Positions 11,542 to 60,607 of a DNA stretch of 64,000 nt are shown piece by piece. The notes under the pieces are model-generated. The model was given only the letters and a program-made list of their open reading frames with translations. It was not told where the DNA came from and did not search any database. The DNA comes from Macrostomum lignano. Lineage: Eukaryota. The stretch is from NCBI GenBank assembly GCA_002269645.1, contig NIVC01000337.1:310001-374000 (forward strand), written 5' to 3'. Both the position numbers and the translations under genes were made by a program. Within the stretch, counting starts at the first letter, position 1. Each line of letters begins with the position of its first letter.

Positions 11542-13193
<1,652 letters not shown>

Positions 13194-22185: not shown

Positions 22186-22244
22186 GCGTCATGTAAAAAT
22201 AAATGAGGCGTCACGTGAAACTGTGCAGTGACTCTTTGGGAGAG

Positions 22245-36406: not shown

Positions 36407-39256
36407 TCACTTGGCAACAGCCGACACAACGGTAGCAGCAGGGTTATTGGTGTAGAACTGGATGTTGTTCTCTGCCTCGGGCCTCGCGTACACTGCGTAC
36501 AGCTTCGGAGCGAACAGGATCGACAGCAGCAGCGCGTGCGTGAGGCTGGACGAGAACGCAAGCAGCAACATTGCGGTAGTCAGAGAGCTGGCCGAAAGAG
36601 CGGACGGAACGAACGCCGACCACAAGAAGAGGCCGGACACTCCGCAAGCCAGGATGCACTTGGTGTCGTGAAAGTTGTCCGGAAGCGATCGGGTCTTCAG
36701 CGACAGGCCGCACGTGACAGTCAGGATCAGCAGGTTACAGCACAGCGGAGTCCAGAATGCCGTGGTCGCGATCGCGCAGTTCTTCTCCACGACTGGTCGG
36801 ACCGAAGGATCGGTCACAATCTGTTTGAGCTCCGAGCTCAGTGGTCGGAACACGGTCACTCCGCTAAGCAGCAGGCACTGCAATGCACCGCATGGATGGG
36901 TTCTAATCTCATTTGCTGGTGCGTGTCATATGCTCGTAGCTACACATTTGTCCTACAGCATGTCCTGCGTTTGTCCTACAGCATGTCCTGCATTTGTCCT
37001 ACAGCATGTCCTACATTTGTCCAACAGCATGTCCTGAATTTGTCCTACAGCATGTCCTGCATTTGTCCTACAGCATGTCCTGCATTTGTCCTACAGAATA
37101 TCCTGCATTTGTCTTTAAAGCATGTCCTGAATTTGTCCTACAGCATGTCCTGCATTTGTCCTACAGAATTTCCTCACCATTCCAAAAATGACTGCGGCCA
37201 GCATCATCAGCATCGGCTTCTGTCGCGCGAGCCAAGGTACCGGACGACCCACTCTGGATGCAGAGAAGATCAGATGGACGCGAAGGGTCTTCACCAACTG
37301 ACTCGCGTAGCAAGCAGTCAGGCTGAGCTGGAATGCGCAGTTCAAAGCATTGCACATTACGTGCGAGCTGTCTACAGCGAACAGACCGAGACACGCTAGA
37401 CCGAGGAGGTTCCCACACATGCACGTGACGGACAAGTGTATCGACGAGGCCTTGATGAGCTTGTGGTGTCGACGGTTGATGAACAGAGCGAGCACGACGA
37501 CCAGGAAGATCGAGAGTAGAGCGAGACATGCCAGCAGCACAGGAAACTGCAGTCCGTCTCTCCACGCGTACACCGGTATCGACTCGCAGCTCAGCCGGTC
37601 TTGACTGGGCCAGTGAAACTCCGAACACGACAGACACGACTTGCCATCATCCGACACGATCTCCTGCTTGAAGCACGGCTTGCACGTAAAGCAGCAAGCA
37701 TCTGTCTCCAACTTGATTTCGCCAGCACTGCACGGAGCACTGCAGAATGACTTTGGCAGTTCCGACTGAGCTGCATGCTGATCGGAGCTCGAGTTCTGCC
37801 ACCATCGAATAGGTGTGAGGTCGCTCAACGTAAGACCGGCTGACTCCGTCCACGTTCCGACCTTCACCAACTGACCGTCCGGCTGCTCCTGACGAATCTC
37901 GTAGGCCGGCGATCCGTCACCGCTCGAGTCGAAGCTCACGTTTCCGGTTCGCATGAAAGGGAAGCTGGAGTTCGCAAGCAGCTTCATCACCTTCGGACCT
38001 GTGACACATGCACTCACAGCCGTAACATTCGGCCACTTTGTCGCGCAATCGATCAGAGCGACACGCTCGATACACGAGACCAGAATGTTGATTGAGTCCA
38101 GAAGTCTTGCGACAGGAGCCACCTCAGAGTCGATTGATAGACTCGACTTTGAGCCGACTCTACAACTGCCGTCAGAGCAGCACGATGCAGCGCTATCCAA
38201 TGTGCAGTTGAAGAGAAGTCGGAGCAGTTGTTCGCCGAACGGATAGCCGAGGACCTCAGACCCGTTCAGTGAGTGGTAGAACTGGATGAGGTCGGGCGTG
38301 GCGAACTTTGTAAACGAGGTATAGATCGCACCCGTGGTGAAATGTTTGTAGGCAACGGAATTCGCATCCGTTGTGATGATAACTCCTTTTCTGCTACTTA
38401 TCACTTGGAGTACAAACTCAGGCATTTTGCTAAACGTGTCAAACATAAGAAAGCCACGCAGGTGGGGGTACTGACTCATCTGGGTGTCGACATCCTCCTT
38501 TGTCAAAAACATGTTGATAGGTAAAGTGAAAGCCACGCACACTGTCTGACCGAATTTGCTACTTTGCTGAAGCAGTAGACGCGTGTTCTGGAGCAGTCCT
38601 CTACCGTACACATCGTCTCTGTGCACGATTCCTACCATGGTCCAGTTGAAGTACTGCACGAGGTGTACGACTGCCTTGGCCTGGTAGCTGTCAGGAGCTA
38701 CTTGACGGAACACGTTGGGGTAGAGCGTCTTGTCCGACAGAGCATCGCTGCTGCACTCGTTTCCGACCTGCGGCATGGAGTAGAGAGACAGCTGACGGGA
38801 CACCAGCTGCGTCTCGCTGCTACGCCAGCCCGACACGACGGCATGAACGAAGTAGAACTTTTCTCCGAGGCTGGACACTACCTGGTCGCAGAATCCGGCA
38901 GCCGCATCAAGGCCGGTCGGGTGTGTCCATGCGGGCCTTATCCGCTTCAGCATGTCCACCAGACGACGGTCCAGGTAGCACGGATCAAGATGGAGCAGAC
39001 CGAGGCGGAGATTGCGACTGGTCCATTTCGCATTGATGAGTTTAGCAGCGTAGTGCGGTGCCAGATTGCGCAGAAAAATTTGTTCGCTTATCATTGAATT
39101 GTGAGTGTCACAGTATTTATTCACACTTTGCAGAACGGCTAAGTTGATGAGGCCGTTCGGGACGCATAGCACCTGTCCAGGGTGGTACTCTACATTCTGG
39201 GCTGTAACTGTGTGCAAAAGATAAAGCGCAACAACTGTGGTTGCTGAGAGGGCCAT
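36407..39256 (-). CDS. Class C GPCR (mGluR/CaSR/taste-receptor-like), copy A, 849 aa
   Basis: Exons 39256-37178 and 36877-36407. Signal peptide, Venus flytrap domain (SDALSDKTLYPNVFRQVAPD...FNWT), Cys-rich domain (FCSAPC...CCFTCKPC), 7TM with VKTLRV, KTRSLPDNFHDTK and LFAPKLY. Confidence 0.95.
36950..37170. repeat. ~23-bp minisatellite (CAGCATGTCCTGCATTTGTCCTA) in the GPCR A intron; homologous arrays at ~47975-48200 and ~59800-60060
   Basis: Read directly in all three paralog introns. Confidence 0.93.
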
Positions 39257-42200
39257 CGTTGCTAAAAATTTGCTAGTTTTTTTCCGTTAAGACAGAAGAA
39301 AGAGGCAGTCCGTTTTGGCAGTTTAATTTTATGTTGAGCCCGAGACTGCCAGCAATTGGCTGCTGGCCAACCCGTGGGCGCCTTTCATCGGTTCAATTTT
39401 TATAGGCTCCTATTGTGCGACTCTGATGGAGATGGTTTCTGTCGTGGAACCGGATAGAGCTGGCTGACGAAGGTTTTTAGCTGAGTGATGTATGCGATCT
39501 TGGCTTTTACCAGAGTGTCAAACAGTCTAAGAGGAAATATAATTTACTAGCGTATGCAACCCAATAGGTAGCTATAAATTTGTCTCTTCGTTTGCGGATA
39601 CAGGGCCATAAGGTCTAACGCAAACACTCAACTCATGATCCTTCCGATCTCTCTCGGCCTCATCAACCACTCATCAGTCTCTGCGACAGTTAACCAGGTC
39701 CAACCAGCTACAGGTGAGAGCTCGCCAAAAGTAAACAGCCCTGTCCATTGTTCAAGTTTGGCCAGATAAAACAGAGGAAGAGAGCGAAAAAGATCTTTTA
39801 GCCTAAAACAGGAAAATTTAGTGAGCCAGCAAATATCGTATCAGCATGGCATTCCCCCTATTGGGCCTGAGCTCTAGCAGGCCGGTCATCAGGCCCTTTG
39901 CGCATGATGCAGCAGATTCGGACAATGAAGAGCAAAGGCTGGATGAATGCTCCTCTCAGTCATTGCTTCACCGGTGTCATTTGCTATGTCCCATTTAGAA
40001 TAGAGCTTGGCCGAATGATTTTTGCTAGCCAAGTTTGCAGCTCATTGCGGGTGATTCTGAGTATTACTTGGGATTAACTTGGATGTAAAAAGTCTGATAT
40101 ATGCCAACACTGATGACTTTGCGGCACCCAAAACAAAGCAACTCGAAAACCTACAAAATGGTTTAATACAAACGACCAAATGCTTGTTCCTGTCTTAGCG
40201 GGTGTAGCTCGTACTCAAAGTTTTACTTTTACCTGTTTTAATTAGTTTAAAAAGTTACTCGAGACAATTGTGTCGCTTAGGCCACTCTATTGTGGGATCG
40301 TTTCGTGGTGTGGCAGTTCGGTCCTGTAACAGTTTTTTATATGACAGCTTGGTCATGTAACCTTCTTTCGTGTGACATTTCGGTCATAACCCTTTTGTCG
40401 TGTGGCAATTTGGTCATGTACTCGTATATCACCAAAACTGCATCAGTCAGCGATATTTGAAAACTACACAATAACAAGAGAGTTTGAAAACTTATTGGTG
40501 AGAAAATATTTTGAACGCCTGTATGCAAGTTTCATGTGAACACTTAGCTAGATCAGAGCCGTGCGGCATTAGGCAGCTCCACCAGTATCGCAGCAGTACT
40601 GCTGTCGCAGATCTTGGGTGTTGATGTCAGCAGTTTTCGTGTGAGCTTGACGCTCTAAGTGCAAGCCAACTTCATCAGGCTGAATTTCTCCGTTTTTCGC
40701 TTGTGCAAACCATTAGGCTGGCAAGCACAATGAACTTCCGTTTTGCACTGGTCTTGCTGTCCTGAGATGATCTGTTGATTGTCGATGTTCGTGCTGCTGA
40801 GATCGTTGATGCTGCTTCTGCTGCTGCTGTTGTTTTTGTTGTTATTGACGGGCCCAGCTGGGTCACCTGGTCATTGGGCCGACGGGGACGGTCTAGCTGC
40901 AACATGGCACAGCCAGTCGTCATTGTCCCGCTCGCCTCTGGACAGGGGCCTTGCACCACCGCGTCGCCGCGCAAGTGTGCAGAGGGCATGTCGGCGAGCT
41001 TGCCACCAGGTCCACCAGGGTCAACCCCAGCGGAACCGTAATACCAGCTTTCGTGTCCGTAGCCAGCGGACCTTCCACGCCACGCCTGACAGTCCAGCAC
41101 CGGCGGCCAGCCCCGATGGGGTCTAGCCAGTGTCTGGAGCTGCTCAGAGCCCTGCTGGATGTGAGGCTGCTGCTGCTGCTGGTGTAAGCCGAACTAAGTT
41201 GGGTGTGCCTTAGACAGAGGCTAGCGTTCGCAACGTTGGCGCCTACTTTTTAACTTTGGTCCCCTCGCTCCAGGCTCACGTTGGGTCCTCTCGTTGCCGT
41301 CCAGCCTCGGCCAGGTTACACGACCAGGTGCCCTAGGCCTAGCCTAATTCCGGTTCCTAATCCTAATCCTATCAACATTTTCCTATGGCTCATAAGGCTA
41401 TTCGTCATTTCGTAGGAAATTTTATTGTTCGCCAAAATACATTGAACAAAAGATCACTACAAGCTCGAATGTTTATTTTAGTTTATTTATTTGTCCGAGA
41501 TTTCGTCAACCGGGGTAAAAAAGAGTCTGCTACAGCTTCTTGTAAATTGTTCTCTGGATTGTACGAGGCGAGAATTCATATTTACTAGCCTCCCAAGTGA
41601 GTCGGGGCAGCAGTTGAAGCTGCGCTGAGTACATTGCACAAGGGGAGAGCGAGGTGCAGCGGAAAGCAAAGAGAGACGCGTCGTCAGAGTTGACGATGCC
41701 CCTTGGCGTTTGAAAAGCACGCACCTGCAGTACAATAGCAACCCCCAACCCCGATCTAGCGACCAGTGTACACACGTACACTACAAAGGTTAGAGAGCAG
41801 ATCAGTGTGCAAGACAACCCTAGCCACGTACACCCGATGGAAGGCGCCGCAGTTACACTTGTCCTCTTTTGAATGCATGACTTTCATACCGCATGTAGCG
41901 AGGGTAAAGAAAGCATTAATACATTTGCTAGTGTATTAATGTTTGCACGGTAGACGTTAGGATTGGACCCAGTGTGATACCAACCTCTTGTACTAGAGGT
42001 CTCAGGCTCGATTTTCAGGCTCGAGGAGTGACATCGAGGGCCAGCTGGGCATGGAGTGAGTAACGTCTCCATATTACTATATTTTGTTAGTCAAACTGAC
42101 GTAAAGAAAAGCACGAATTACTTATTGCCATTTCATATTTATTTGTAACTCTCCGTTCGGCCGCGTAGGATCGAAATCATGAGCGAGATTTTCTACCAGC

Positions 42201-42789
42201 AACGCGGACCCAAATTCCCAGAGTTTTGATGGTGCTTCATTTCACTACGAGGAAAATAGGGCAAAGCCAGGCGGCCAACCCACCACTGGATAAGTGCCCG
42301 TGAGTGGTCGCCATCCAAAGCCGCATAAATCAACTGTTCAAAGCAGACGACGCGTCACTAACTACATGCGATCTCCGCTTTCTTCAGAACCGCATCGGTA
42401 TTCAGCAAGGCGCGCGCCAGTCTGTCAATGGCTTTCAAGCTTTATTCACCATAATGCACTTTTTCTCAGTTGACTTTTGAAGACAACTGTCCGTGAAGAC
42501 GCCAATAAGTCATCAGATTCATGAATAAAGTCATTTTTCAACGCAATACTGATGCATAAAAATTGAGCATAAAATCATTATTGATTCAATGTGCATTATG
42601 TTGAGCCGTGAGCCGCGCTACTCGTGTCAAAAGTTTATTACACTTAAATGAGAATAAAACACATTTTCCACATGCAACCAGATAACAACTGTAGGACGGT
42701 ACGAGTACATCTGACGTACTCGCCACTAGCTGGTTTCGCGGGCAAAAGCACTCTGACTGTCCAAAGTTCTACTGGGCACCAATAGCTGC

Positions 42790-43260
42790 GACCAGCTGAT
42801 GGAGTTGGCAGCCGCGGCGACCGGGCGTCACGTTGACCCGCTGGCGAAGGAGATGATGGAGCAGGGCGTGAAGCCTACATCGGAACACCTTCCCGTGTGG
42901 CGCTGCGTCGCGGGCGACCCGCTCCAATTGTTTCCGGATCCACTCAACTTGTGAGAAGATAGCGCAATCACCAGAGACTCGGTCTACCGCTTCGGCCTAG
43001 ATCTGAATGATAAATGTGCAGTGTGCGAGGAAACCCGATAGCGCTGTTCACCTCCTCATCGACTGCCCGGATTATCAACCGGCTCGTAGTCAGGTCTGGG
43101 GAGGTGGCTGCATCGACATAGACGACATCTTCAGAGACGCGAGCCTCATCTGCCGCTACCTTCGCAATGTGGGCCGCACGGACCCGCCCATTGACGATCT
43201 TGGCGGACGGACAGCTGCCCCTTGCCGCGGGCGAGGACAGGCGGGAGTGAAGAGAGAAAG
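42790..43260 (+). mobile_element. 5'-truncated, frameshifted 3' end of an RNase H-bearing non-LTR retrotransposon
   Basis: VDPLAKE (end of RNase H) followed by CAVCEE.DSAVHLLIDCPDYQPAR (terminal CCHC-type motif of LINE ORF2). Confidence 0.7.
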
Positions 43261-45494
43261 AGAGAGCAGGGTTTTGAACTCAGAGTATCGGATGATTCCA
43301 GGCGAGATTCGGATCTTCCATTTGGCAAGGCGTCAGATGGGGCCTGTAAGTTGGCTGGCAATTTACACTAGCTTTGCGCTTGATGTTGACCTTACAATCT
43401 GATCACGGATGCGAACAGTTCCATCAGGCGCTGTCAGCCGAGAATACTGCCTGGGTCGGCTATGAGGTGCCTCTGTGACCTCACTCTGCCAAAACACACG
43501 AGTCCCCCGAGTTTACTTAGGTGGAAACTTTCTTGACCAAGAAATTATGCCTGCCGCGTGAGTTCGTCAACCATTGCAACAGCTCATGTGAAAGAAATGG
43601 GCTCAGTGCTGAGCGCTTCTCATCGCTGTCTTGACAGAAAACAGTTTTAATCAGCAAATTTTAAAACGAGTCAAATACATATTAGCAAATATGAACGGAT
43701 GCTAAGCTGTACAGTAGCTACAGCTGATTTCACGTTGATTTGGATTGCTTAGGCTCATCTGAAACTATCAGCCAAACTGCGAACTTCCAAAATCTTTTTG
43801 ATTCAGCACGTACGCTCGTATTTTAGATTTTTTCTTACTCATTACAGCAGTTTTTGCGCTTTCAGTTTTCTCCAACAGCCACACTGGTGCCTGAGAACCC
43901 TGCAAGCTTCATCTAATGACGATATGGGATTTAGCTGACCCTGTCACAGAATATACACAGAATAGCGATTCGGCAGTCTCTATGAAAGCGAAATAAATTG
44001 CACTTGCACTACTAACGTTGTGAAGCTGATAAGTAGTTGCGATTTTTTAACGCGAGTTGAATGTAAAAGTCGAGCTCAAGATAGCCTTTGAAGCTTTGAG
44101 TCGTCGTTTTGACGCTGCAGCATGAATGCTGCGCTATCATTGTAATTAATTTGTTCATAATGGTGCGTGCGCAAAGTCAGCAGCAGTAGTAACAACTGTT
44201 ATAACCTCATTGCCATATATATGTAAGCTAAAAAACAAAAGTAACAAACATATAACAACAGGTTAAGTTTTAGCCCTGCACGCAAGGCAGGAAATACCAG
44301 GCGCCAACAGAAATTGCAAATCTCATGCAATCACACTCATCCGCTTGAACTTCCCTGATTGCTCACTGCAAAATGCTCGCCCATGCTTTCTCTCCTGAGC
44401 ACAATCCTGCGCCATTGCAGCAATGGTGTAAGCGCAGCTTCGAAAACAGCCTTGCAATGCCCATCACGCATCTCTCTGAGTGCTCTGCAGTGCAATGAGT
44501 CGCAATAATGATGCATTCATTGGCCAATAATTTGCTGATTCTGTGTGACACACCAGCATGCATGAACTTTGGCACTTCCAGCAATTTGAATTAGCGTTCC
44601 ATCTCAGTGACAGCTCTGATTGTAGAGTGTTCTACCTCCCTCAAAAAGTGATAAAATTGTTAACGTACTACTTACATAGTAGTAAGACAAGTAGCATGTA
44701 TAAGAATAAGCGTTGAATCACATATATATTTTTAATCAACCAATCAGAAGAGCGAAAAACAACATTATTTTTAGCAACCAACCAATCACGTGTGTGACCT
44801 ACATTTGTCAGTTCAAACCCCACCTACGATTCATTCATTCGGCTTGCACCCGGATGAACCAATCAAAGATATCTAAAAATAGCTCAGCTACGGTAACAAT
44901 CATGCGCGCTTACACTAGACTAGTTGCTTAACTTTCTACCCTGTCATCTTGACAGCAACCAAAGCGTGACCCTTTGACATTTACGAAAAAGGTGATGGAC
45001 GACCTCGAGAGAGGTCCATTTGCCTATAAATACAAGTGGTCCGAAGCGGACCGGAGCCATAGACGAGACGAGAGGAGAAGCTCCGAAGAGGAAGCCTTAG
45101 GAGGACTTCCTGATCACCAAGTCAATCGAGACTCGCGTCGAGTTGTTGCGGTAAGTAAGCCTTGCTCATTTGCGCCCGTGGTTTGAGTCGACTCACTCAA
45201 ACTGAGTGATAGTGTTAGAGTCTGTTGAGACTCTTGAGTCCATCTGAGACTCCATTGGTTGTAGTCACCCGAAGGACTACCCTAAAAGATCTTAGAGGAT
45301 CTATTAGAGATTACCGGAGCAATACCTAGAGTGCATTGAGGCACTACTAGAAGGAGAAGGCTTAAGTGAAACCGCAGATCGGCGCAGGGTACCCATTGTT
45401 GACACGAGGCCTCTGATTGGTCCTGACTGCAGATACCGGCCGGAAACAAATTCATCGGAAGTAAAAGAAGATACAGGACCAGATCAACCGATTC

Positions 45495-46075
45495 TAGACG
45501 TCTACACTTCCTGAAGGACAGGAACGCAACAGATTGCAACAGAACTACAAGGAGATCTCTCAAATCGGACTCAAGGGAACAGATACCTTCATTTGATAAC
45601 TGGGTTGCCTAGCAAAGTAGCTAGAAGTAATTGTTCCTTGATTACTGAGAAAGTCTTGGTAGTAAGGAACACATCATGATAACTGCTCGGCTTGGAATGG
45701 CTAAGCTGTCATCGCACTTGCACTTCAGTCGCAGGAAGCGTGTCCGATCAAATTGCTCCCTTCAGTTCTTGCTGGCACACCTCACACTTGCACTTGGTTT
45801 CAAAGAAGCGGAACAGCAACCAACCGCCGACATATGCGCACTTCTCGTGATCTAAGTCATCCGATGTAGCAAAGAGCTCATCACCTGCTTCTGTGAGATC
45901 TGAGTCACAAGTGTTGCTCTGAATGGTGGACTGGATCTGGAGCTTCTTGGCTCACTGCAGCCTTGGATGCTCTCTGGCTGCTGGAAACCGGTGAAATTTA
46001 GTGCCCGGCGGACACTTGTCGGCGTAGTTGAGGCATCCGTACGCAGCGCACTGAAGCCTCGAAGCAGACGCAGGC
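45495..46075 (-). mobile_element. Degenerate P-element/THAP9-like transposase C-terminal remnant
   Basis: Broken frames give FSALRT...TPTSVRRAL, CAYVGGWLL...CKCEVCQQEL and FLRLK...LAIPSRAVIMMC, matching P-superfamily C-terminal motifs. Confidence 0.6.
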
Positions 46076-46391
46076 ATGCAAAAACAGTATCACAATAAGC
46101 TGCGTATTCAAACTCTAGCAGATATGCCTTCGGTATTAGCACTTTTGAAGCCAAACCTAGCTTCAGCAGCACTAGCTTGTGCCATTAAGAATGCAATACA
46201 ACAAATGCAGTCTAGCGCGATCAAAAATGCATTTGACCTGCATGCTTTCATGCCACAAGCTCGTGCTAGAAAGCCCAAGGCATGCTGTCTATGGCACTAA
46301 CTTAGAGCGCAGAGGCAGCAGAAGCCAGGGCCAGCCTTAAGGTAGTTTCTAAAAATAGAACAGTTTAGAAGGGGGGTGGGTTGGTTCTATC

Positions 46392-46418
46392 CATAGATAG
46401 AATGTTTTAGTATCTGTG
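46392..46418. mobile_element. 27-bp micro-element flanked by the 8-bp direct repeat GTTCTATC
   Basis: CATAGATA...TATCTGTG termini; its right end is the reverse complement of CACAGATACTAAAA, identical to the MITE end at 3087. Confidence 0.65.
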
Positions 46419-46899
46419 GTTCTATCAAGCCTTTCTATATTCTGTGGGACAAACCCGCAATAAATGGCAAAGAATTGGTAAAGTGCCATTCAGCCTACTT
46501 AGTCTTTCTTCACAACAAGAGTAGCCAGAATAGAATATCATTCTTGTGCAAGAAATTTTCTCAAAATGCGGGATTCGCCATTCTGTGTGTATTCTGTGAC
46601 CCTGATTGTGCCGCAGGCGAGATAAGTCAGCAAGGTGAATCGACAAACATTTGCTTGAATGCCTGTATAAATCTGAGCAGACTGTTAACTGACTCCGTGA
46701 CCTGTTGTGTTCTGCTTGAGTAAATCCAACATACTCATTTTTAACCTCTGGCATGCTTTCTGCTGTTGGCTGTCAGCTATTATGCACTAATGTAAAGAAA
46801 ATGATTTTACGCTCGTAAACTTTATAATCATATTTATATAAATAAAGAAAAAATTATAAAGCTTTTACTGCAATCAGGTCTTCCTGGCTAGTCACCCGG

Positions 46900-47436: not shown

Positions 47437-50285
47437 CTAAGACCTTGATGCCATAACGGTAGTAGCAGGGTTATTGGTGTAGAACTGGATGTTGTTCTCT
47501 GCCTCGGGCCTCGCGTACACTGCGTACAGCTTCGGAGCGAACAGGATCGACAGCAGCAGCGCGTGCGTGAGGCTGGACGAGAACGCAAGCAGCAACATTG
47601 CGGTAGTCAGAGAGCTGGCCGAAAGAGCGGACGGAACGAACGCCGACCACAAGAAGAGGCCGGACACTCCACAAGCCAGGATGCACTTGGTGTCGTGAAA
47701 GTTGTCCGGAAGCGATCGGGTCTTCAGCGACAGGCCGCACGTGACGGTCAGGATCAGCAGGTTGCAGCACAGCGGAGCCCAGAACGCCGTGGTCGCGATC
47801 GCGCAGTTCTTCTCCACGACTGGTCGGACCGAAGGATCGGTCACAAGCTGTTTGAGCTCCGAGCTCAGTGGTCGGAACACGGTCACTCCACTAAGCAGCA
47901 GGCACTGCAATGCCCCGCATGGATGGGTTCTAATCTCATTTGCTGGTGCGTGTCATATGCTCGTAGCTACACATTTGTCCTACAGCATGTCCTGCGTTTG
48001 TCCTACAGCATGTCCTGCATTTGTCCTACAGCATGTCCTGAATTTGTCCTACAGAATATCCTGCATTTGTCTTTAAAGCATGTCCTGAATTTGTCCAACA
48101 GCATGTCCTGAATTTGTCTTTAAAGCATGTCCTGAATTTGTCTTTAAAGCATGTCCTGAATTTGTCCTACAACATCTCATGCATTTGTCCTACAGAATTT
48201 CCTCACCATTCCGAAAATGACTGCGGCCAGCATCATCAGCATCGGCTTCTGTCGCGCGAGCCAAGGTACCGGACGACCCACTCTCGATGCAGAGAAGATC
48301 AGATGGACGCGAAGGGTCTTCACCAACTGACTCGCGTAGCAAGCAGTCAGGCTGAGCTGGAATGCGCAGTTCAAAGCATTGCACATTACGTGCGAGCTGT
48401 CTACAACGAACAGACCGAGACACGCTAGACCGAGAAGGTTCCCACACATGCACGTGACGGACAAGTGTATCGACGAGGCCTTGATGAGCTTGTGGTGTCG
48501 ACGGTTGATGAACAGAGCGAGCACGACGACCAGGAAGATCGTGAGTAGAGCGAGACATGCCAGCAGCACAGGAAACTGCAGTCCGTCTCTCCACGCGTAC
48601 ACCGGTATCGACTCGCAGCTCAGCCGGTCTTGACTGGGCCAGTGAAACTCCGAACACGACAGACACGACTTGCCATCATCGGACACGATCTCCTGTTTGA
48701 AGCACGGCTTGCACGTAAAGCAGCAAGCATCTGTCTCCAACTTGATCTCGCCAGCACTGCACGGAGCACTGCAGAATGACTTTGGCAGTTCCGACTGAGC
48801 TGCATGCCGATCGAAGCTCGAGTTCTGCCACCATCGAATAGGTGTGAGGTCGCTCAACGTAAGACCGGCTGACTCCGTCCACGTTCCGACCTTCACCAGC
48901 TGACCGTCTGGCTGCTCCTGACGAATCTCGTAGGCCGGCGATCCGTCACCGTTCAAGTCGAAGCTCACGTTTCCGGTTCGCATGAAAGGGAAGCTGGAGT
49001 TCGCAAGCAGCTTCATCACCTTCGGGCCTGTGACACATGCACTCACAGCCGTAACATTCGGCCACTTTGTCGCGCAATCGACCAGAGCGACGCTCTCGAT
49101 ACACGAGACCAGAATGTTGATTGAGTCCAGAAGTCTTGCGACAGGAGCCACCTCAGAGTCGATTGATAGACTCGACTTTGAGCCGACTCTGCAACTGCCG
49201 TCAGAGCAGCACAATGCAGCGCTATCCAATGTGCAGTTGAAGAGAAGTCGGAGCAGTTGTTCGCCGAACGGATAGCCGAGGACCTCAGATCCGTTCAGCG
49301 AGTGGTAGAAGTGGATGAGGTCGGGCGTGGCGAACTTTGTAAACGAGGTATAGATGGCACCCGTGGTGAAATGTTTGTAGGCAACGGAATTCGCATCCGT
49401 TGTGATGATAACTCCTTTTCTGCCACTTATCGCTTGGAGTAAGAATTCTGGAATGCTACTAAAGGTATCGAATACAAGAAAGCCACGCAGGTAGGGGTAC
49501 TGACTCATCTGGGTGTCGACATCCTCCTTTGTCAAAAACATGTTGATAGGTAAAGTGAAAGCCACGCACACTGTCTGACCGAATTTGCTACTTTGCTGAA
49601 GCAGTAGACGCGTGTTCTGGAGCAGTCCTCTACCGTACACATCGTCTCTGTGCACGATTCCTACCATGGTCCAGTTGAAGTACTGCACGAGGTCTACGAC
49701 TGCCTTGGCCTGGTAGCTGTCGGGAGCTACTTGACGGAATACGTTGGGGTAGAGCGTCTTGTCCGACAGAGCATCGCTGCTGCACTCGTTTCCGACCTGC
49801 GGCATGGAGTAGAGAGACAGCTGACGGGACACCAGCTGCGTCTCGCTGCTACGCCAGCCCGACACGACGGCATGAACGAAGTAGAACTTTTCTCCGAGGC
49901 TGGACACTACCTGGTCGCAGAATCCGGCAGCCGCATCAAGGCCGGTCGGGTGTGTCCATGCCGGCCTAATCCGCTTCAGCATGTCCACCAGACGACGGTC
50001 CAGGTAGCACGGATCAAGATGGAGCAGACCGAGGCGGAGATTGCGACTGATCCATTTTGCATTGATGTGTTTAGCAGCGTAGTGCGGTGCCAGATTGCGT
50101 AGAAAGATAGATTCTGTGAGCTTCGCTCCAGGTGTGTCGCAGTAGAACTGTGTGCTCTCTAATACGGCTAAATTAATTATTCCGCTTGCGATGCACAGTT
50201 GCTGTCCGGGAAGGTACGTGACAGTTTGAGATGCAAGTCCAAGAACTAGAGTATAAGCAATTGCAGCTGCTGTCAGTGAAGTCAT
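47437..50285 (-). CDS. Class C GPCR, copy B, 848 aa
   Basis: Exons 50285-48207 and 47904-47437; same architecture as copy A. Confidence 0.95.
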
Positions 50286-51113
50286 ACTTACTGTCTCTGC
50301 TACGAAGGGCGGATACTTAGCAGGATTTTTCTTATGACTTAAGTATCAAATCGGGAAGCCACGCCCATGCCCTCGGCAACCAATGAAGCGTGAGGCCTTA
50401 ATCAGTGCAATCGATTGGCAACGTTTGGTTTCAATTTCTTCCGTCGTGCAAGCTCGATCTGCACAAGGAATTTCAGAGCAATTAAAATTTAAACTCATGG
50501 ATTTTCGATAAAAGCCTTTAAGACTAGATTGATCGCAGCAGAGTATATTGATCGATGAGAATTATTGACTGTGCTCTCAAAACTCAATTTGTTTCTGCTT
50601 CATGTACGAGCTGGCATTATTGCAAGAAGTGAAATCGAGGAGCATCAAAAGAAGGAAATCGTTGGTAAATGTTTTAAAAACGTTTTTTGTTACATTTTTT
50701 AAAACCCACAGGGATCAGCTTTTCAGCTACCTTTGATAAACGAAAAGAGTTGATAATTTTTCTCGTATTTTTTCTAGTCAGTCAATGTTTACGAAATCGA
50801 TTCAGTGAGTTAAACCGACATATTCACAGGCCATTTGCTGTTGTCAACCCGAGGTTCTCGAGGTCAATGACATTTAAGAAATCATTGACTGTCGCTCAGC
50901 TCAGCTCAAGGTGACAAGGTGATAAGATAACACGATTGGCTCTGTCACTCTGACACGCAACTGATAACGACTGATTTCAACGTAAAATGCACCGCTATTG
51001 TTCTCACTTGGGAGTTCATGGTTGACAATATTTTGTTGAACCCTTTTTAATATGAGACGCTATGCCAGCCTTTAAGTACACGCTCTTCAGACAGTTCACG
51101 CATTCCACGATGC

Positions 51114-51410
51114 AATAATAATAATAATAAATAATTGGTTACACCTGCTCCAAAGGGCAGATGTGCAACCGACAGCTCAGCCGCAGCTGAAGGCTGCTTA
51201 CGGCTGTTCAGTTTAGGAATTGGGGGTCGCCACACACACCCTAAACTACCCCAGCGAGTTCTGGTGCCCATTTTACAGCTGGGTGAACTGAAGCAATACA
51301 GAGTTCAGCGTCTTGCTCAAGGACACAAATTTTTCCGAGTGGGTCGAGAATCGAACCCCCGACCTTTCAGTCGTGAGTCCAACGCTCCAAAAACTAGACT
51401 AAAACCCCTC
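51114..51410 (-). mobile_element. tRNA-derived SINE with a Deu/Nin-type central domain and (TTA)n tail
   Basis: On the minus strand: A-box TAGTCTAG, B-box GGTTCGATTCT, then TGTGTCCTTGAGCAAGAC...CCCAGCTGTAAAATGGG; AAT repeat tail at 51114-51135. Confidence 0.85.
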
Positions 51411-52379
51411 ACTAGGCTACAACCCCGATGTAACTGTAGAAATTTTTTGTGAACATGCGCTTGGGCTAAATTAACAAACAATTAAAATTAAGACTCCCAG
51501 TTCTCATCGACTATTTGAATACGGTTTAGCTTTGAATTTTATAGAACAAAAAATTGTTATTAATAGTAATTTATACTTAATTTTTGCTTTTTCGACCACT
51601 AATTTCACTCTCTCTGACTAGAGGCTGTGGAGATATCAGGAGCTTCCTTCGCCAGGCAGTATAGCCCAGGGTTTTACCGAGAGCTGCATGATTTTATCAC
51701 GACTCTACAAGCTGACTAAATCCATGTTGTAACAGCTGATTCAATTTTCGAGTTCACACGAGAAGAAAATGTAGCTGGCGTGGCTTGTACACGTATGCTG
51801 GGGTCGAATTTTAGGGAATTTTATACAGGATAATCTACTGTAAAATTGGGAGTTGCCCTCAAAGATGTCAAGAGGCAGACGGACATAAAAGAAGGGGGTT
51901 CCGAACGGGTGACTACTGACAGACGGGTGAAGGACAGCGTCTGCAACCTTTGACCGCCAAGCAGGAAATATCGAGTGCCTTCCTTGAACCTCGAGAGCCA
52001 ATTCAATCAATTTTAGCGTTGAGACAGTTTCAGTGGCTTTGTCGCCAAATTGAGACATTGAGAGTAACTATTCATTCCAAGATGACTGAGCAGATATCAG
52101 CAAGTACAAGATAATTTTTCAATGCAATCGATTAGTCTGATGGAGCCATCAACTCTTAAAATCTATAAAGATATCTTCCTGGCAACGACAAACATTATCA
52201 TTATTTCTTTGCGTGTCAATGTCTTTTTGACCATGCGCCTAATTTACTTCAGTACCTCCTCAAGCTCTGAAGTTTGAGCCCTTTTCTTGGGGACGATAGA
52301 TTTTGATAACTCCATTGCCCTACTTAATTACTTAACTCGTAGGTACTACTTAATTACTACTGACGAAGGGCACAGGCAC

Positions 52380-54790
52380 CAATCGCAACCCCAAGCTAAC
52401 ACAGAATTAAAGACGCTAGCCTCGGGCTGCGCCCACCCGGCGTCTGTAATCTTCATCCGGCCGGTGTCCCGGACGAATGCGCACAGGTCACGGATCCGGT
52501 CCAGGCTGTCCAGGGTGGTCAGCTCGTCCAGCCTTAGCGGGCATTCGAGATGGTGTCTCCGCGCTTCGTTGAAGTGCGGGCAGAAGGTGACGTGGTGCGC
52601 GGCAGTTCTGGGTTAAATGGGAGAGCAGTTTTTTCTCTTTTCTTAAATATGTCTCTGGAAGAAGCCAAGGTCAGTGATGGCCATGGACATCTTCCTGAGG
52701 TCAGTTTACTCTAGGAGATTAGGTGTTTATGGCAGGCATTGCCGTTCGTGTTTGCCATTATTCCGAGCAGTGCAGCTGGTGTTGATGTCCTAAAAATTTG
52801 TGAGTGGCGCAGTTGACGGATTATTTCGGGGCAGGCAGCTTGATCGACGGGTGCGCTCTACCCGGGATGCTGCCTCGTTTGGCGAGTTGATCCAACAGCT
52901 CACTGCCAAGGATGTTGTTGTGGCCTGGTTTCCAGAGCACGTTGATCTTTTTAAGGATCGCTAGCTTTAGCTTTGTACAGCTGCTTTTAACATTGATTTA
53001 TGGCCATGACTTCGGATTGAAAAACCGAGATGAAGGCTCTCTTGCAGGATCGCCTCACCCTTATGGAAAACGGCGATGCCCGCACCGGCCATGCTATCGC
53101 ACAGGATCCGTCAGTGAATCAGTGGGTGCCCTGACTTCTCCCGGTTAACGCCCACATCCAGTGGGTGGCTACCTCGCGGCGGGATGGTGTACCTGAGTCT
53201 TTTCCTGGGATGAGCGAGGGGTTTACAGACCCACCTACAGTACGTACAGGTTGAGGTGGATGTGTTGAAGATCGCAACGGATATAATCCAGGTGGGGAAT
53301 AAGCGTCCTCTCAGGGATAAAGCCGAGGGGAGTTAGAGAGTTAGTAATGGCTTTATCACAGATTAAGCGCGTGGCACCTCTTATCGCCTCAGCTCGGATA
53401 ACCAGGTGCAGCGGAATTGTTACGTTTGTGGAAGAATTTGAAGACGAAGACTTAGGAAGATTTGAATTGTAGTATTTTATTTGCTGCAGCGGCTCGTAGC
53501 GCTTGTATTCCTTTTAATAAAGAAGCTATCGAATCTTAAAACAAAAGAAAGATACAGTTGCATTGAGTCCCTAGGAACCATAGACTAATAAATAAGCTTA
53601 GAAATATAAAGAAGATGTCAGCAGATCAAATATGCAACAGGAGGCATGTTGAGGATGGTGTTGAGCCCCTCGTATGGGGTAGATGAGTTCGCATGATGGC
53701 TCCGCGAGAGTGCATCCCTAGATTTTGTTTCCATGACTAGGGAGATGCCCCTAGCATTGATGGTAAGGTTCCACATGCTCCACTTCCGCTTCGTGGTGAA
53801 GATAATGGCCACAGTCGTGGCGGTGCTAATATAGCTTTTTGCAAGCCATTTGATACTACGAGCAAGCAATTTAATAATCAGTGGCTCAAAGATGCCGAGC
53901 TGCTCATTGTCCTAGAGGAAGTCGTCCATGTGGGTGACGGTGCCTTCCATCTGGGCGTCAGTCAGTGTCCCGCTGGCCGCGCGTACACAAATCTTATCTA
54001 GAGGCTCAGCCGCGACCTTGGCGTAAGAGCTGGCCGTCTCTCTACCCACGGAGCGCTTCGGATCCAGAGGGGCAATGATACGGTCTTCCAGCTTCTGGGC
54101 AGTGCTGGGGGCCGTGCTGGCCGCGCCATCGCGCTGCGTGATGGCATCGCCACCTAGGTCTCCACTGGTGGGAATAGAAGTTTCCCTGCTTGGGGTAGCA
54201 TCCGCGCGAGGTACGTGGAGAGAATAGCCTCCTAGTTGGAGGTTTGGTGGATTTTTGAACCCCCCTCCCGACCGCAGGAGCATGTAATTCAAAATCCACA
54301 AAAATGGCTGAAATGGGGAAGAGAAGATTGTTAGAAATTAATAAAAAACAGTTCGGCGCCTGGATATACCCCCAGTCAGCCAGAGGCTAACACCTGCGAA
54401 CTCCGACGAACTCCGACGAACAGAAGGAAGGCTTTGGGTCACCGTCTTTAACCAGGGTTTCCTTCCTGACCAAGCTCCGGAAGGCGCCTGGTCCACACTC
54501 TACAAGATGAGGGGCGGGTCGGGTGCAGGGTCGGGTTCACAATGCCAGGTCGGGTTGACTGTCAGCACTGCTTCCCCTCTTCCACAGGTCCGGCACTTGT
54601 GAACCCTTTCACTATTCACCTTGCAGCCTACCCCAAGAATAGGCAGCGGGGGGGGACCCCGTCGCCCACCAGTAGAGCGAAAGGAAGGCGAGCTCGCCTT
54701 CGGAAAAGGCGAAAAGCTGGCAGATGTTACAGAGTCCCTCAATTTGCAGGCGCCCTTAGCTCTCTTCATTACCCTAAGAGGTACTTTTGT
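52380..54790 (-). mobile_element. Degenerate, internally deleted RNase H-bearing LINE
   Basis: Minus strand carries an ORF1-like segment with SYAKVAA (54300-53620), RNase H motifs FTDGS..AGAGIA (~53110) and INVLWKPGHNNILGSELLDQLAKRG (~52900), and terminal [16 protein letters not shown] (~52600). Confidence 0.8.
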
Positions 54791-56375
54791 ACTTTGAAGT
54801 TGGATTCACAAAGGAAGATTTATCTCGTTCTTCTCTGTGTTAAAACTCGCCATAACTTTCGGCTTAAAATACGCAGAAAACCGTTGCTCAAACGTATTTT
54901 GCTTAAGGAATAGCATGAAACATTGTACGGGCTAATATGGTAGCTCCTAGTTTTGATCCATCATAAACATCGCAATTTGATCCTATTCGGAGTGTCATAT
55001 ATGTGAGATTATGGCTTAACAACTTCAACTAACAACCCATCTTGTCGTGAATGTGGATGCATTGACCTACTCGTAGTACTCGTAGATTTGAAATGCATCT
55101 TTAATCGCAAATACACATGGGAATTGCGACAGCTTAGCTCCTGGTTTAAATCCTGCAGCGCCCATGACGATCAATTTCAAGCTTTTCCTGCTCGTCGAGG
55201 TTTTATCACAGGCTTGAGTAGTTTAAGCTTAACTAACTCAAATTTCTGGGCGCAACTGATAGATTTCTTGCTGCTTCACTTCATACGTGTATCAAGAAAT
55301 TCAATCTGATAAATGGCTTGCAATAAGCAACCGTTAAAAGGTGGCGCTACGAGCGCTCACCACTGCACATTGCACAAGCATGGACTATACTGAGGGAAGG
55401 ACAATGTCAATATTTTAATAACTCATTCAGTGGTTATTCTCTCTCCCTTTAGTCGCTATTCTCGCTAAATTTCTGTCAACTTTTAATGTCAATTGTGCAA
55501 AAATGTGTTCGCAATACACATAGGAGATCGACTTAATCACGGAAATGCTGCTCAGGAACACCACCTTGAGACAGTGATAGGCCGAAAGGGCTGATTGGAT
55601 CTTCGGATGGTAAGATATTCTACGTTCATAAGTTATAAATCTCATATTGAAACATCAAGAATATTTCCTGCAATATCTGCTGCAGCAATTAACTTTTTTA
55701 CTACATGTCTCTACCGAAGATTGCAGTGACGTGACACCACATAGCAAAATCCAATATCCATCAACTCTCAAACCCGTGATTGCTTAGTAAGGGTGGGGAA
55801 AATCTCTGATCGATAAGGTAAAATGTTACAAAGCATGGATTTAATTTTCGGTTTCGTCCAGACCTAACAGATGTGACTATTCAGCTGGAATATCAGAAAG
55901 GAACGCTCGATAAATGAGAAATGCAAATTCATCTCTCATCTTTCATCAATTCACTCTACGCAGGGAGTAGACAGTCGAATTGCGCTGAAACTTTGCTCAT
56001 TCTGCCTGGAATGCTGAGCCAGATCCGATGTTAGTCGCAAATCTATTATTGCAAGCTGAAACTTGTGAACCAGCGCACGCTGTAGGAACAGCGTTCTGAC
56101 CATTACCGTAATGAAACTGCAGCGAAGCACGCGAATCAATATCCTGATAAAACCGTGCCCACGTTTCAGCTTTATCACAACCCGTTCCCCAATATTCTGG
56201 TCAAAAATCTGATTGGGTCAAAAAAGTTTCGACAGTATGAAGCCGGACAGACATCTCTTTAGGCCAAATATAAAAAACTGCACGACTTTACCGAGAAAAA
56301 TGCATTCTTGACGCCTCGTACAGGCCCGTGAAGCAGTTAACCGTCTTGACAAAACGAGTCGAAAGTCCTACTAAC

Positions 56376-59300
56376 ATGGTATCTTGGATAACCAGCCGTA
56401 TCTTTGTATACACGTTTTTATTGAGCACTCTGGCAGCTCCATCGTCTGAACAGCAACTGCAAAAGCAGCAGCTGAGCTGCCATTCAGGCAGCCTGTTCAG
56501 CTTGGCTGTGGTGCAGACCTCCCGATACCAGTGCAACTCGCCAGCGAATGTCCTGACGGAAGTCGAGTTTCTTCGGTCACTAACTCCGATCTATGCATTA
56601 AGGTTGACCAACAAGCGTCTTAAAGGCACTCTGCCGTCAACGCTAGCAGCACATCCTGCCATTGGAATGGTGTTTTTGGATACCTGTCTTGACCAGCAGG
56701 CCACCGTGAGCCTCGCCAAGCACTTACGACCAGCTGGGCTATCAGGAATTTCCTCCGCAAACCTCTGTAACCTGGTTATACCGCTCCTGGGTGCAAACTT
56801 CTACCCGGTGCATGCCGTGGCCGCTGGCTGGTACAGCAGCACCACTCAGCTGGTGTCCACCTTGATTTCTGCGCACAGAATCCCGCAGCTTGCCACAGAG
56901 GCTAGCAGCGATGCCCTGTCAGATAAGGTCGAGTTCCCCAATGTCTACCGGCTGGTTCCACCAGACAGCTACCAGGCAAAAGCTGCTGTCGATCTCATTC
57001 TACGACTCAATTGGACATACATTGGCATACTGTACCGAGATGATGTGTATGGGCGATAGGGGTGTTCGGGTCGGTCATTTTTTCGGGGTTCGGGGTTTAC
57101 CCCGAACCCGGTACCCCTACCCCGAACCCCGAACCCCGTCCCAAACATTTCTTCCAACCCCGAACCCCGAACCCGGTACCAAAACCCGACCCGACCCCGA
57201 ACGTAACCCCGAACATTTTCACGCTTATTTTGGTCAATCATTTTAATAAATTAATACACTTTTTCCACCGATAAAGGTACAATATTAATTTGTATTTCAC
57301 TTCAATTGTAAGCCTTTTGGGCGCGACGTTAGCTCATGAATGACTTGGGACAAACACAGTTTATATTTGTTGGATAAGTGTAAATTATATTGCACAATTC
57401 TTATCCTTCAGCTTCAGGAAATTCAAACTGTAATTGTTAGTTACAATGTTAGTTAATTCGGTCCTTTGTCATTTATTTTCAGTAGATGCTAGATAGTAGA
57501 CTACATACTGGGCTCATAGACAAAGTAAATGAATAATAATAGTAATATTACATCTATGAGTTTATTTAAGCTGCAAAAATAGAGTACAATAAAATTAGAT
57601 TATACCCTGTAGTGCAGATATCAGTAGAGATAGAACTAGAGCGATAAAGAGATAGCACAGATAAAACAATGAAACAATGAAACAGGAGAGTTAATCACAA
57701 ATATATATTTATTTTTACTTTTGACTACAGTTAACAGTAAGTCAGTAGTGGTATAACAGAATTGCTATGTAAAAACTAAAGTGACGTCTTTACATAAAAT
57801 TGTATGCTGATATGAGTAGGTAATCATTGTGATAATTGATTATTGGCGACTGATGCGTGGAGAATAATAGTGTATTTATAAATTTTAAGCTTCCTCATCC
57901 AATCCAGAAGTTCAGACCATGTTACACGTAGCACATGTAAAATTATTACTGAACGAAATTTTTTAAATCATCAACTGCAAGACTGAATGGGTCGAAAAAC
58001 GACAATCCTTATTTACCAGAAAGTGTAAATGAATCCATGGTTCTATCTGCTATTTCCGTTTCAAATTGTATGTAAAATATAACTTAAGTTGTATCTGAAA
58101 CTCAATGCATATCTTTCGCATTGTGGATTTTGCATAAGGAGTAAAAAGTGCTTGAAAATACTCTTGAGAATGATAATTGTTCAAAACCACGAAAACCCCG
58201 AAAACCCGGTGGCCAAACCCGACCCGAACCCCGAACCCGGTACCCCTACCCCGAACCCCGAACCCGACCCGGAACACCTACCCCGAACCCCGAACCCGGT
58301 ACCAAAACCCGACCCGAAACCCGACCCGACCCCGAACCCCGAACACCCCTAATGGGCGAGGCTTGTTGCAGAGCACACGTCTGCTTCTGCAGTCGGCTCA
58401 GCTCTCTGGAAGTAACAAAAGCGTTTGCATCGCCTTTATGTCAGCCATCAACACTTTCACGCCCGTGTCTGAAGTTTTACAGACGATTCGGGAACGAAAA
58501 CACCTGAAAGCTTTTTTGATTTATGAACTCTTCGAACATCTACCTGAACCAATTCTTACTGAAGTTTTTAACGAGGGAGGAATTATTGTAACCTCAGACA
58601 CAAATACAGTGCCCTACAAAAAGTTCACACAAGGTGCTCTCTACATCTCCTTCCCATCATTTTCCACGCCCGACCTCATCCAGTTCTACCACTCGCTGAA
58701 CGGATCTGAGGTCCTCGGCTATCCGTTCGGCGAACAACTGCTCCGACTTCTCTTCAACTGCACATTGGATAGCGCTGCATTGTGCTGCTCTGACGGCAGT
58801 TGTAGAATCGGCTCAAAGTCGAGTCTATCAATCGACTCTGAGGTTGCTCCTGTCGCAAGACTTCTGGACTCAATCAATATTCTGGTCTCGTGTATCGAGC
58901 GTATCGCTCTGGTTGATTGCGCGACAAAGTGGCCGAATGTTACGGCTGTGAGTGCATGTGTCACAGGTCCGAAGGTGATGAAGCTGCTTGCGAACTCCAG
59001 ATTCCCTTTCTTGAGAACCGGAAACGTGAGCTTCGACTTGAACGGTGACGGATCGCCGGCCTACGAGATTCGTCAGGAGCAGCCAGACGGTCAGCTGGTG
59101 AAGGTCGGAACGTGGACGGAGTCAGCCGGTCTTACGTTGAGCGACCTCACACCTATTCGATGGTGGCAGAACTCGAGCTTCGATCGGCATGCAGCTCAGT
59201 CGGAACTGCCAAAGTCATTCTGCAGTGCTCCGTGCAGTGCTGGCGAGATCAAGTTGGAGACAGATGCTTGCTGCTTTACGTGCAAGCCGTGCTTCAAACA

Positions 59301-60607
59301 GGAGATCGTGTCCGATGATGGCAAGTCGTGTCTGTCGTGTTCGGAGTTTCACTGGCCCAGTCAAGACCGGCTGAGCTGCGAGTCGATACCGGTGTACGCG
59401 TGGAGAGACGGACTGCAGTTTCCTGTGCTGCTGGCATGTCTCGCTCTACTCACGATCTTCCTGGTCGTCGTGCTCGCTCTGTTCATCAACCGTCGACACC
59501 ACAAGCTCATCAAGGCCTCGTCGATACACTTGTCCGTCACGTGCATGTGTGGGAACCTTCTCGGTCTAGCGTGTCTCGGTCTGTTCGTTGTAGACAGCTC
59601 GCACGTAATGTGCAATGCTTTGAACTGCGCATTCCAGCTCAGCCTGACTGCTTGCTACGCGAGTCAGTTGGTGAAGACCCTTCGCGTCCATCTGATCTTC
59701 TCTGCATCGAGAGTGGGTCGTCCGGTACCTTGGCTCGCGCGACAGAAGCCGATGCTGATGATGCTGGCCGCAGTCATTTTCGGAATGGTGAGGAAATTCT
59801 GTAGGACAAATGCATGAGATGCTGTAGGACAAATTCAGGACATGCTTTAAAGACAAATGCAGGAAATTCTGTAGGACAAATGTAGGACATACTGTAGGAC
59901 AAATGCAGGACATGTTGTAGGACAAATGCAGGACATGCTGTAGGAAAATTGCAAGACATACTGTAGGACGAATACAGGACATACTGTAGGACAAATGCAG
60001 GACATGTTGTAGGACAAATGCAGGACATGCTGTAGGAAAAATGCAGGACATGCTGTTGGAAAAATGTGTAGCTATGAATATATGACAGGCATCTGAAATG
60101 AGATTAGAACCCATCCATGCGGTGCATTTATTTCAGTGCCTGCTGCTTAGTGGAGTGACCGTGTTCCGACCACTGAGCTCGGAGCTCAAACAGCTTGTGA
60201 CCGATCCTTCGGTCCGACCAGTCGTGGAGAAGAACTGCGCGATCGCGACCACGGCGTTCTGGGCTCCGCTGTGCTGCAACCTGCTGATCCTGACTGTCAC
60301 GTGCGGCCTGTCGCTGAAGACCCGATCGCTTCCAGACAACTTTCACGACACCAAGTGCATCCTGGCTTGTGGAGTGTCCGGCCTCTTCTTGTGGTCGGCG
60401 TTCGTTCCGTCCGCTCTTTCGGCCAGCTCTCTGACTACCGCAATGTTGCTGCTTGCGTTCTCGTCCAGCATCACGCACGCGCTGCTGCTGTCGATCCTGT
60501 TCGCTCCGAAGCTGTACGCAGTGTACGCGAGGCCCGAGGCAGAGAACAACATCCAGTTCTACACCAATAACCCTGCAACCATATCTACTACTCCAACTAT
60601 GCAGTAG
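56376..60607 (+). pseudogene. Class C GPCR, copy C, interrupted in exon 1 by a DNA transposon (otherwise an open 859-aa frame)
   Basis: Segments 56376-57056 and 58360-59787 rejoin as DDVYGR|GLLQ once the insert and one TSD are removed; exon 2 is 60137-60607. The insertion creates TAG at 57057. Confidence 0.9.
57057..58351. mobile_element. 1295-bp non-autonomous hAT-type element inside the GPCR C coding exon
   Basis: 14-bp TIR TAGGGGTGTTCGGG; perfect TSD ATGGGCGA (57049-57056 and 58352-58359); CCCGAAC subterminal arrays; AT-rich core with no transposase. Confidence 0.96.

Follow-up and report, generated by a model that had tools for sequence, protein, structure and literature searches.

Regional homogenisation of three neighbouring class C receptor genes in Macrostomum lignano, best explained by repeated ectopic gene conversion

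How can neighbouring genes differ strongly at one end and be nearly identical at the other? The question is raised by three class C G protein-coupled receptor (GPCR) genes, designated A, B, and C, in a 64,000-nucleotide stretch of the Macrostomum lignano genome (assembly GCA_002269645.1, contig NIVC01000337.1, positions 310,001 to 374,000 of the forward strand). This whole stretch is called the window, and coordinates below count from its first letter. A first-pass annotation, made from the letters alone, had described the three genes as mosaics and had proposed gene conversion, which is well known from clustered gene families, as the cause. Our analysis upheld that proposal: synonymous and intronic sites are homogenised, the N-termini and flanks are saturated with differences, the patterns of variable sites are clustered, and the GC content at third codon positions (GC3) is higher in the common part. 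It is very probable that A, B, and C are old paralogues resembling metabotropic glutamate receptors (mGluRs), that their 3' two-thirds were recently copied between them by repeated ectopic conversion, and that C was later hit by a transposon.

Three receptor genes and their common 3' unit

Gene A (36407-39256, minus strand) has a spliced coding sequence of 849 amino acids (aa) without an internal stop. According to its open reading frame (ORF) and Pfam matches, exon 1 (37178-39256) encodes the signal peptide, the flytrap, the cysteine-rich domain (CRD), and the first half of the seven-transmembrane (7TM) domain 7tm_3; reading of the splice site puts its end at the donor ...VIFGM/GTGAGG, the slash marking the junction. 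A 300-bp intron (36878-37177) with GT...CAG boundaries separates it from exon 2 (36407-36877), which encodes the second half of 7tm_3 and a short tail and includes the stop codon. Gene B (47437-50285, minus strand), a class C receptor gene with a spliced coding sequence of 848 aa, consists of exon 1 (48207-50285, from its ORF and the splice-site reading), a 302-bp intron (47905-48206), and exon 2 (47437-47904, stop codon included). In gene C (56376-60607, plus strand), of the same receptor class, exon 1 is interrupted by a transposon. Its 5' piece (56376-57056) encodes a diverged flytrap, with the likely start methionine at 56376 in an ORF that opens at 56328, and in its 3' piece (58360-59787) the diverged part ends at 58663 and the homogenised part begins at 58664; a 349-bp intron (59788-60136) and exon 2 (60137-60607, stop codon included) follow. 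The single intron of each gene splits the 7TM domain at ...VIFGM/CLLLSG in A, B, and C. A and B are in tandem with start codons 11.0 kb apart, and the start codons of B and C, which are arranged head to head, are separated by 6.1 kb. A tblastn search revealed no further receptor copies or fragments in the 64-kb window, and the intergenic DNA contains no notable ORFs.

All three copies carry the Pfam domains ANF_receptor, NCD3G, and 7tm_3. The flytrap (ANF_receptor) was detected with an E value of 7.4e-23 in A and 4.4e-18 in the 5' piece of C. NCD3G, between flytrap and 7TM domain, scored 40.3 bits in A and 41.8 bits in C, with a cut-off of 38.9. The 7tm_3 domain is complete, since, of the 251 profile positions, 10-126 are matched by exon 1 and 129-251 by exon 2, and the full-length alignment of the receptors to mGluR chains reaches TM7. 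Most of each receptor gene's only intron is a minisatellite with a 23-bp unit (CATTTGTCCTACAGCATGTCCTG), which lies within the converted unit; Tandem Repeats Finder (TRF) counted 10 copies in A (36945-37174), 10 in B (47973-48203), and 12 in C (59791-60066). Long antisense ORFs, such as that at 36536-37399 on the plus strand, were rejected because they stem from the minisatellite and from codon composition.

Over the first ~60 codons and upstream, A and B are 0.41-0.60 identical in 100-bp windows, and identity climbs to 0.97-1.00 at A 39076 / B 50105, which encodes the FLRNLAPHY motif. Both blastn and the windows thus put the jump practically where it had been seen by eye (A ~39075, B ~50105). 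The resulting A/B tract (A 36425-39076, B 47452-50105, both on the minus strand), delimited by blastn and sliding identity and, on the A side, also by synonymous divergence (dS), is 96.99% identical over 2654 bp, intron included. It begins at codon ~62 and spans nearly the whole flytrap. The first-pass annotation had called the N-termini upstream of this tract completely different and possibly swapped. Their divergence was borne out, but they are old homologues that have diverged and not unrelated sequences that were exchanged: they share 42% amino-acid and ~50% DNA identity and the landmarks C...NLAV...YC...E..FLR, and their proportions of synonymous (pS) and non-synonymous (pN) differences are 0.80 and 0.37, respectively.

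The residual differences between A and B comprise the signal peptide and ~40 mature residues, a 70-bp island, and scattered single sites. The island, already recognised as a short divergent patch, occupies 38395-38464 in A (minus strand) and 49424-49493 in B and has 16 differences in 70 bp, with surroundings that are 99-100% identical. Its pS is 0.45 and its pN is 0.13, giving a pN/pS of ~0.3. It encodes a strand-loop-helix that aligns with ...CFCEGMT... of mGluR5 and ...LFMRSDD... of mGluR3, that is, with a lobe-2 loop that we take to be a ligand contact, as a lead and not as a result.

Identity of gene C to A and B is 0.39-0.69 as far as 58663 and 0.95-1.00 from 58664 onward, in agreement with the abrupt onset of near-identity that had been noted at TPDLIQFY. 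This three-way tract (C 58664-60576 on the plus strand, A 38302-36438, B 49331-47465) starts at codon ~328 of A. Because the last ~180 codons of the flytrap, i.e. its last third, are homogenised in all three copies, the unit cannot be described as "CRD+7TM". The contrast of a diverging flytrap with a uniform CRD and 7TM chassis, as first proposed, therefore holds only in that the unconverted parts are in the flytrap; much of the flytrap belongs to the homogenised unit. The inverted arms of ~2 kb reported for B and C were recovered by blastn (B 47465-49381 versus C 60576-58613) with 94.3% identity, the indels being within the intronic minisatellite. As had also been seen, all three copies part just past NNPA, within ~15 bp (A 36437 / B 47464 / C 60577), with A and B alike for 13 bp further, and the 5' and 3' flanks of A, B, and C are unrelated. 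These boundaries were confirmed by blastn and a three-way MAFFT alignment.

Exchange and its alternatives

We compared synonymous and non-synonymous differences in the diverged and the common parts by the Nei-Gojobori method. In the diverged parts, pS was 0.78-0.80, that is, saturated, and pN was 0.35-0.37. From TPDL to NNPA, dS was only 0.048 for A-B, 0.054 for A-C, and 0.026 for B-C, with a ratio of non-synonymous to synonymous divergence (dN/dS) of ~0.2. Within the A/B tract, dS was 0.045-0.055 versus saturation upstream. The 300-349-bp intron and its minisatellite also fall inside the homogenised unit. Pairwise breakpoints had maximum chi-square values of 631-912.

Variable sites of the three-way tract were coded as a where only A differs (B=C), b where only B differs, and c where only C differs. 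Their order is baaabcccbbcacbccc, then 16 a, then the b-rich minisatellite sites, then 11 c, and finally aaaaabcac in exon 2. The 16 sites at which A differs belong to a stretch of 807 bp in which B and C are identical (C 59015-59821 on the plus strand, B 48979-48173). The 11 consecutive c sites (A=B) are located in the 3' part of the intron, and in the intronic minisatellite A groups with C, not with B. Neither the longest run (16) nor the run count was matched in 100,000 permutations (p<1e-5), with or without the minisatellite sites. At the protein level, the alternation listed in the first-pass annotation was reproduced, with C equal to A at IQFY and CIER and equal to B at ALCC, DLNGD, and SFDRH. 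GC3 was 0.70-0.71 in the three-way tract versus 0.55 in the unconverted flytrap of C (p=1.5e-5). Over the same codons (FLRN to TPDL), it was 0.65 in A, which is converted there, versus 0.525 in C, which is not (p=0.003). GC3 of the N-termini was 0.50 in A and 0.38 in B.

The closest relative among 1.84 billion representative proteins was P0122 (UniParc UPI0007A15616), with 45% identity. From FLRN to TPDL, P0122 is 47-48% identical to A, B, and C at the amino-acid level, and the A-C and B-C pairs are likewise 48% identical, whereas A-B identity is 96%. From TPDL to the CRD, P0122 is 36-38% identical to A, B, and C, which are mutually 95-97% identical; the corresponding values are 44% and 100% for the CRD and 53% and 98-100% for the 7TM domain. 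The last third of the flytrap is thus the segment least conserved with P0122, yet it is homogenised among A, B, and C. P0122 itself, only a distant stand-in for an orthologue, is a predicted protein of 2024 aa with the receptor part only in residues ~1206-2024. The 1200 residues at its N-terminus resemble translated junk and pieces of reverse transcriptase, and P0122 either lacks the receptor intron position or reads through that intron.

Among solved structures, the best relatives in the sequence search were mGluR3, mGluR5, and mGluR2 (E values of 1e-54 to 1e-50). CaSR (1e-35) and T1R2 (1e-22) matched mostly through the CRD and 7TM domain, and the closest affinity in this search was not to the CaSR/V2R/OlfC/T1R clade. 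Named relatives included bichir CASR arrays and, from a chiton and an annelid, mGluR-like proteins. A word-indexed protein search with A returned one match, a coral CaSR-like protein with 22% identity; no match was returned by a metagenome scan with the shared module or by a gene-index search for exact copies of P0122 and of the ORFs of A and B. The mGluR3 residues S151/S152, T174, Y222, D301, and K389, which from mGluR structures we take to bind the amino-acid moiety of the ligand, align with S/S, S, Y, D, and R in A and B. In C, all but the last of these are retained within the diverged part of the gene itself; the last belongs to the homogenised tract.

These results suggest that the near-identity of the three genes is best explained by repeated ectopic gene conversion. 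Several points weigh against this reading or against its details. Domain composition is a partial confounder of the GC3 contrast. Short-read polishing across paralogues could contribute to the alternation at single sites, which may be inflated in this way; the large-scale mosaic could not be. The common 3' end of the tracts could instead be the fixed edge of a copied cassette. Finally, the direction, number, and age of the events are model-dependent because there are three copies and no orthologous locus.

The alternative that survives best is that selection partitions the gene, so that conversion is favoured in the CRD and 7TM domain and opposed in the ligand lobe, as in a chemosensory repertoire. 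We regard it as possible and somewhat doubtful. It agrees with the location of all unconverted parts in the flytrap (the first 60 codons of A/B, the first ~330 codons of C, and the island), with the alignment of the island to the lobe-2 loop of mGluR3 and mGluR5, and with the like interpretation given to a comparable regional pattern in protocadherin clusters. The tracts, however, ignore domain borders: the A/B tract takes in almost all of the flytrap, and the three-way tract includes the last ~180 codons of it. In addition, A equals B at all five mGluR3-aligned positions, and the closest solved relatives are mGluRs and not members of the CaSR/T1R group. Randomly placed tract ends would often give a similar picture when there are three copies, and the data fit neutral conversion limited by homology as well as they fit selection on tract placement. 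A dN/dS above 1 is unmeasurable in the diverged parts because pS is saturated there, and pN/pS of the island is ~0.3.

Unequal crossing-over, or partial duplication with replacement through template switching, could also produce chimaeric genes. The tandem arrangement of A and B in the same orientation, with starts 11.0 kb apart, and the single 3' edge of all tracts would suit such an origin. A crossover, however, carries common sequence into one flank, and here both flanks of every copy are unrelated. Moreover, several nested tracts with different partners would be needed, and a crossover between the inverted copies B and C would yield an inversion of the DNA between them and not a chimaera. 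We therefore judge this origin to be quite improbable.

We give even less credence to an artefact of assembly or polishing, such as collapse of paralogues or haplotypes or mixing of consensus sequences. Mis-polishing could produce the perfect B/C identity over 807 bp and the alternation at single sites. It could not produce jumps of identity from 0.45 to 0.97. The three copies, moreover, share a single contig that has neither gaps nor N; every copy is bounded by its own flanks and begins with its own 5' coding part, which continues in frame into the common part; and they differ by 2-4% over most of the common part, in minisatellite copy number (10, 10, and 12), and through the transposon private to C. 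Constraint alone, through purifying selection or at the codon level and without exchange, can be dismissed even though CRD and 7TM are generally more conserved in class C receptors and dN/dS is ~0.2, because dS drops from saturation to 0.03-0.05, the intron is common too, P0122 is as distant as 36-53% identity over the same segments with its lowest value in the common third of the flytrap, and the site patterns are clustered.

The insertion in gene C, the order of events, and the surrounding DNA

The flytrap of C is interrupted by a putative hAT-like, non-autonomous DNA transposon of 1295 bp (57057-58351, within exon 1), which had been overlooked in the first-pass annotation. It is flanked by an 8-bp target-site duplication, with the left copy (ATGGGCGA, 57049-57056) forming the last 8 bp of the 5' piece of C and the right copy (ATGGGCGA) at 58352-58359. 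Its 14-bp terminal inverted repeats (TIRs), TAGGGGTGTTCGGG / CCCGAACACCCCTA, are perfect (100% complementary), and the junctions read ...GTGTATGGGCGA/TAGGGGTGTTCGGG...CCCGAACACCCCTA/ATGGGCGA/GGCTTG. Subterminal repeats of the CCCCGAA type are present inside the element, and its first triplet is an in-frame TAG. The TIR motif occurs in the window at these two sites only, and there is no other copy of the element. hAT elements are characterised by an 8-bp duplication and short inverted repeats beginning with TAG, and the hAT-like assignment is made from the duplication length and the form of the TIRs. No transposase ORF and no ORF of at least 150 aa was found in 57057-58351, so the element would be non-autonomous if it is a hAT at all.

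Removal of the element and one copy of the duplication brings DDVYGRGLLQ back in frame, matching A and B. We also considered the 1.3-kb interruption as an intron and rejected this on account of the missing 5' GT, the in-frame TAG at its start, the perfect TIRs, and the target-site duplication. A cryptic splice that was checked by eye was rejected because it would shift the frame or lose the conserved VYGRGLLQ. Gene C is otherwise without stop or frameshift, and its private coding changes in the homogenised part are 5 non-synonymous and 5 synonymous. Because of this otherwise intact frame and the 5:5 ratio, the disruption is presumably recent or an insertion allele. Most likely, C has become a pseudogene recently or represents a null insertion allele.

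A separate observation concerns base composition. Private substitutions of C in 58664-60576 comprise 19 changes from G/C to A/T and 1 in the reverse direction, compared with 11:12 for A and 11:6 for B. This AT bias fits relaxed, mutation-driven decay or the omission of C from GC-biased exchanges.

Under repeated ectopic conversion, at least three to four events would be required. The first would have produced the A/B tract, which spans at least 2.65 kb between codon ~62 and a point just beyond NNPA, and the second a tract of ~1.9 kb that pulled C into the pool from TPDLIQFY on; this pooling of A/B and C would date to roughly dS 0.05 ago. A third, very recent exchange between B and C would have covered at least 0.8 kb (the 807 identical bp) plus most of exon 2. 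Shorter exchanges would then account for the mixed patterns at 58683-59014 and for the agreement of A with B in the 3' part of the intron. The tracts probably end together because alignable homology stops at that point, the tails and 3' flanks being unrelated. The transposon would have hit C after the conversions, and the disrupted C could still take part in conversion.

Two origins are conceivable for the island: a paralogue located outside the window may have donated a short tract, or this stretch may have been kept free of conversion. Its pS of 0.45 versus 0.80 at the N-terminus (Fisher p=0.026, with small numbers) favours the former, with an unseen donor of intermediate distance, and for the same reason a simple relic of the original A/B divergence is doubtful. 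A broader scheme, in which the three genes belong to a larger undescribed family of mGluR-like receptors in invertebrates, selection spares the N-terminus up to FLR and the island, the intronic minisatellite initiates conversion, and copies killed by transposons, C among them, act as donors, is speculative, and we consider it unlikely as a whole.

The remainder of the window contains several other features. Downstream of C is a gene for a leucine-rich-repeat protein (61975-63714, minus strand), a single ORF of 579 aa with a predicted transmembrane stretch and a proline-rich tail. Two genes for small nucleolar ribonucleoprotein (snoRNP) proteins are adjacent on the same strand: a GAR1 homologue (15162-15917, minus strand; Pfam Gar1, E 7e-27), apparently of a single exon, and the C-terminal part of NOP58 (18873-20048, minus strand; Pfam Nop, E 1e-60), in which the 5' end of the ORF enters a minisatellite. 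The NOP58 matches are 60-72% identical across animals, fungi, and plants. An ORF of 341 aa (29480-30505, plus strand) had no Pfam match, and Rfam and tRNA scans of the window were empty.

The window is exceptionally rich in long minisatellite arrays, whose units measure ~14 to 40 bp and whose copies are 80-99% identical to each other (1-1067, 1762-2742, 11633-12134, 13699-14810, 16023-16545, 17002-17479, 17946-18850, 19727-20014, 20458-20958, 21678-22203, 27727-28372, and 61054-61655); these arrays give rise to many long spurious ORFs on both strands. This richness, the scarcity of introns, and the junk-fused P0122 prompted the idea of a dinoflagellate origin, which was abandoned after the dinoflagellate spliced-leader sequence gave no match in the window at up to 3 mismatches. 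GC content is 0.30-0.35 in an AT-rich stretch at 22001-26000 and averages ~0.47 elsewhere in the window. A 222-bp direct repeat (1071-1292 versus 9786-10007, 99.5% identity) and an inverted repeat of ~470 bp (3087-3554 versus 11241-10788, 86% identity) may be copies of dispersed repeats or transposons.

Comparison with known systems

The mosaic affects how the genes should be read. Trees based on the 7TM domain or on full-length sequences would place A, B, and C as very recent duplicates, whereas in the flytrap they are as old as the split from P0122, their nearest known relative. A three-exon model would be wrong for gene C, which should be annotated as a transposon-disrupted copy. Over the common unit of ~2 kb, short-read mapping and variant calling will be unreliable. 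The island, at a candidate pocket loop, may be an unconverted piece within the A/B tract.

The putative transposon of C resembles non-autonomous hAT elements in its 8-bp target-site duplication, its perfect short TIRs starting with TAG, and its subterminal repeats. It has no transposase ORF and is present as a single copy in the window.

Vertebrate mGluR genes are dispersed. In contrast, A, B, and C form a tandem cluster undergoing concerted evolution. They share with mGluR2/3/5 the order of flytrap, CRD, and 7TM domain, with a full-length alignment of E ~1e-54, but identity is only ~25-30%, and their tail extends only 9-10 residues past NNPA.

Conversion within this receptor class has been described for OlfC subfamily 9 of channel catfish, in which a fragment-permutation test detected it between recently expanded neighbouring paralogues (PMC6588630). 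The locus described here is like these V2R-like genes in the receptor class and in conversion among neighbouring paralogues. It is unlike them in that A, B, and C are nearer to mGluRs than to CaSR/T1R in the search of solved structures and have two exons; a domain-restricted pattern was not noted in the passages of the catfish study considered here.

The regional pattern has a textbook counterpart in clustered protocadherins, in which regional conversion in the variable exons has been reported for fugu, zebrafish, and human (PMC1852091, citing Noonan et al. 2004), with raised GC3 used as an argument in fugu (PMC1852091). In both systems a divergent 5' part, encoding the N-terminal ectodomain, is joined in one exon to a 3' part that is near-identical, synonymous sites included, and has higher GC3. 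The genes differ from protocadherins in that they encode class C GPCRs, in that the tract includes an intron and a second exon, in the presence of one inverted pair, and in that there are three copies without common constant exons. The A/B/C mosaic is thus a new example of a known phenomenon and involves no new mechanism; it illustrates, cleanly and on a small scale, regional concerted evolution of clustered class C GPCR genes in a non-vertebrate.

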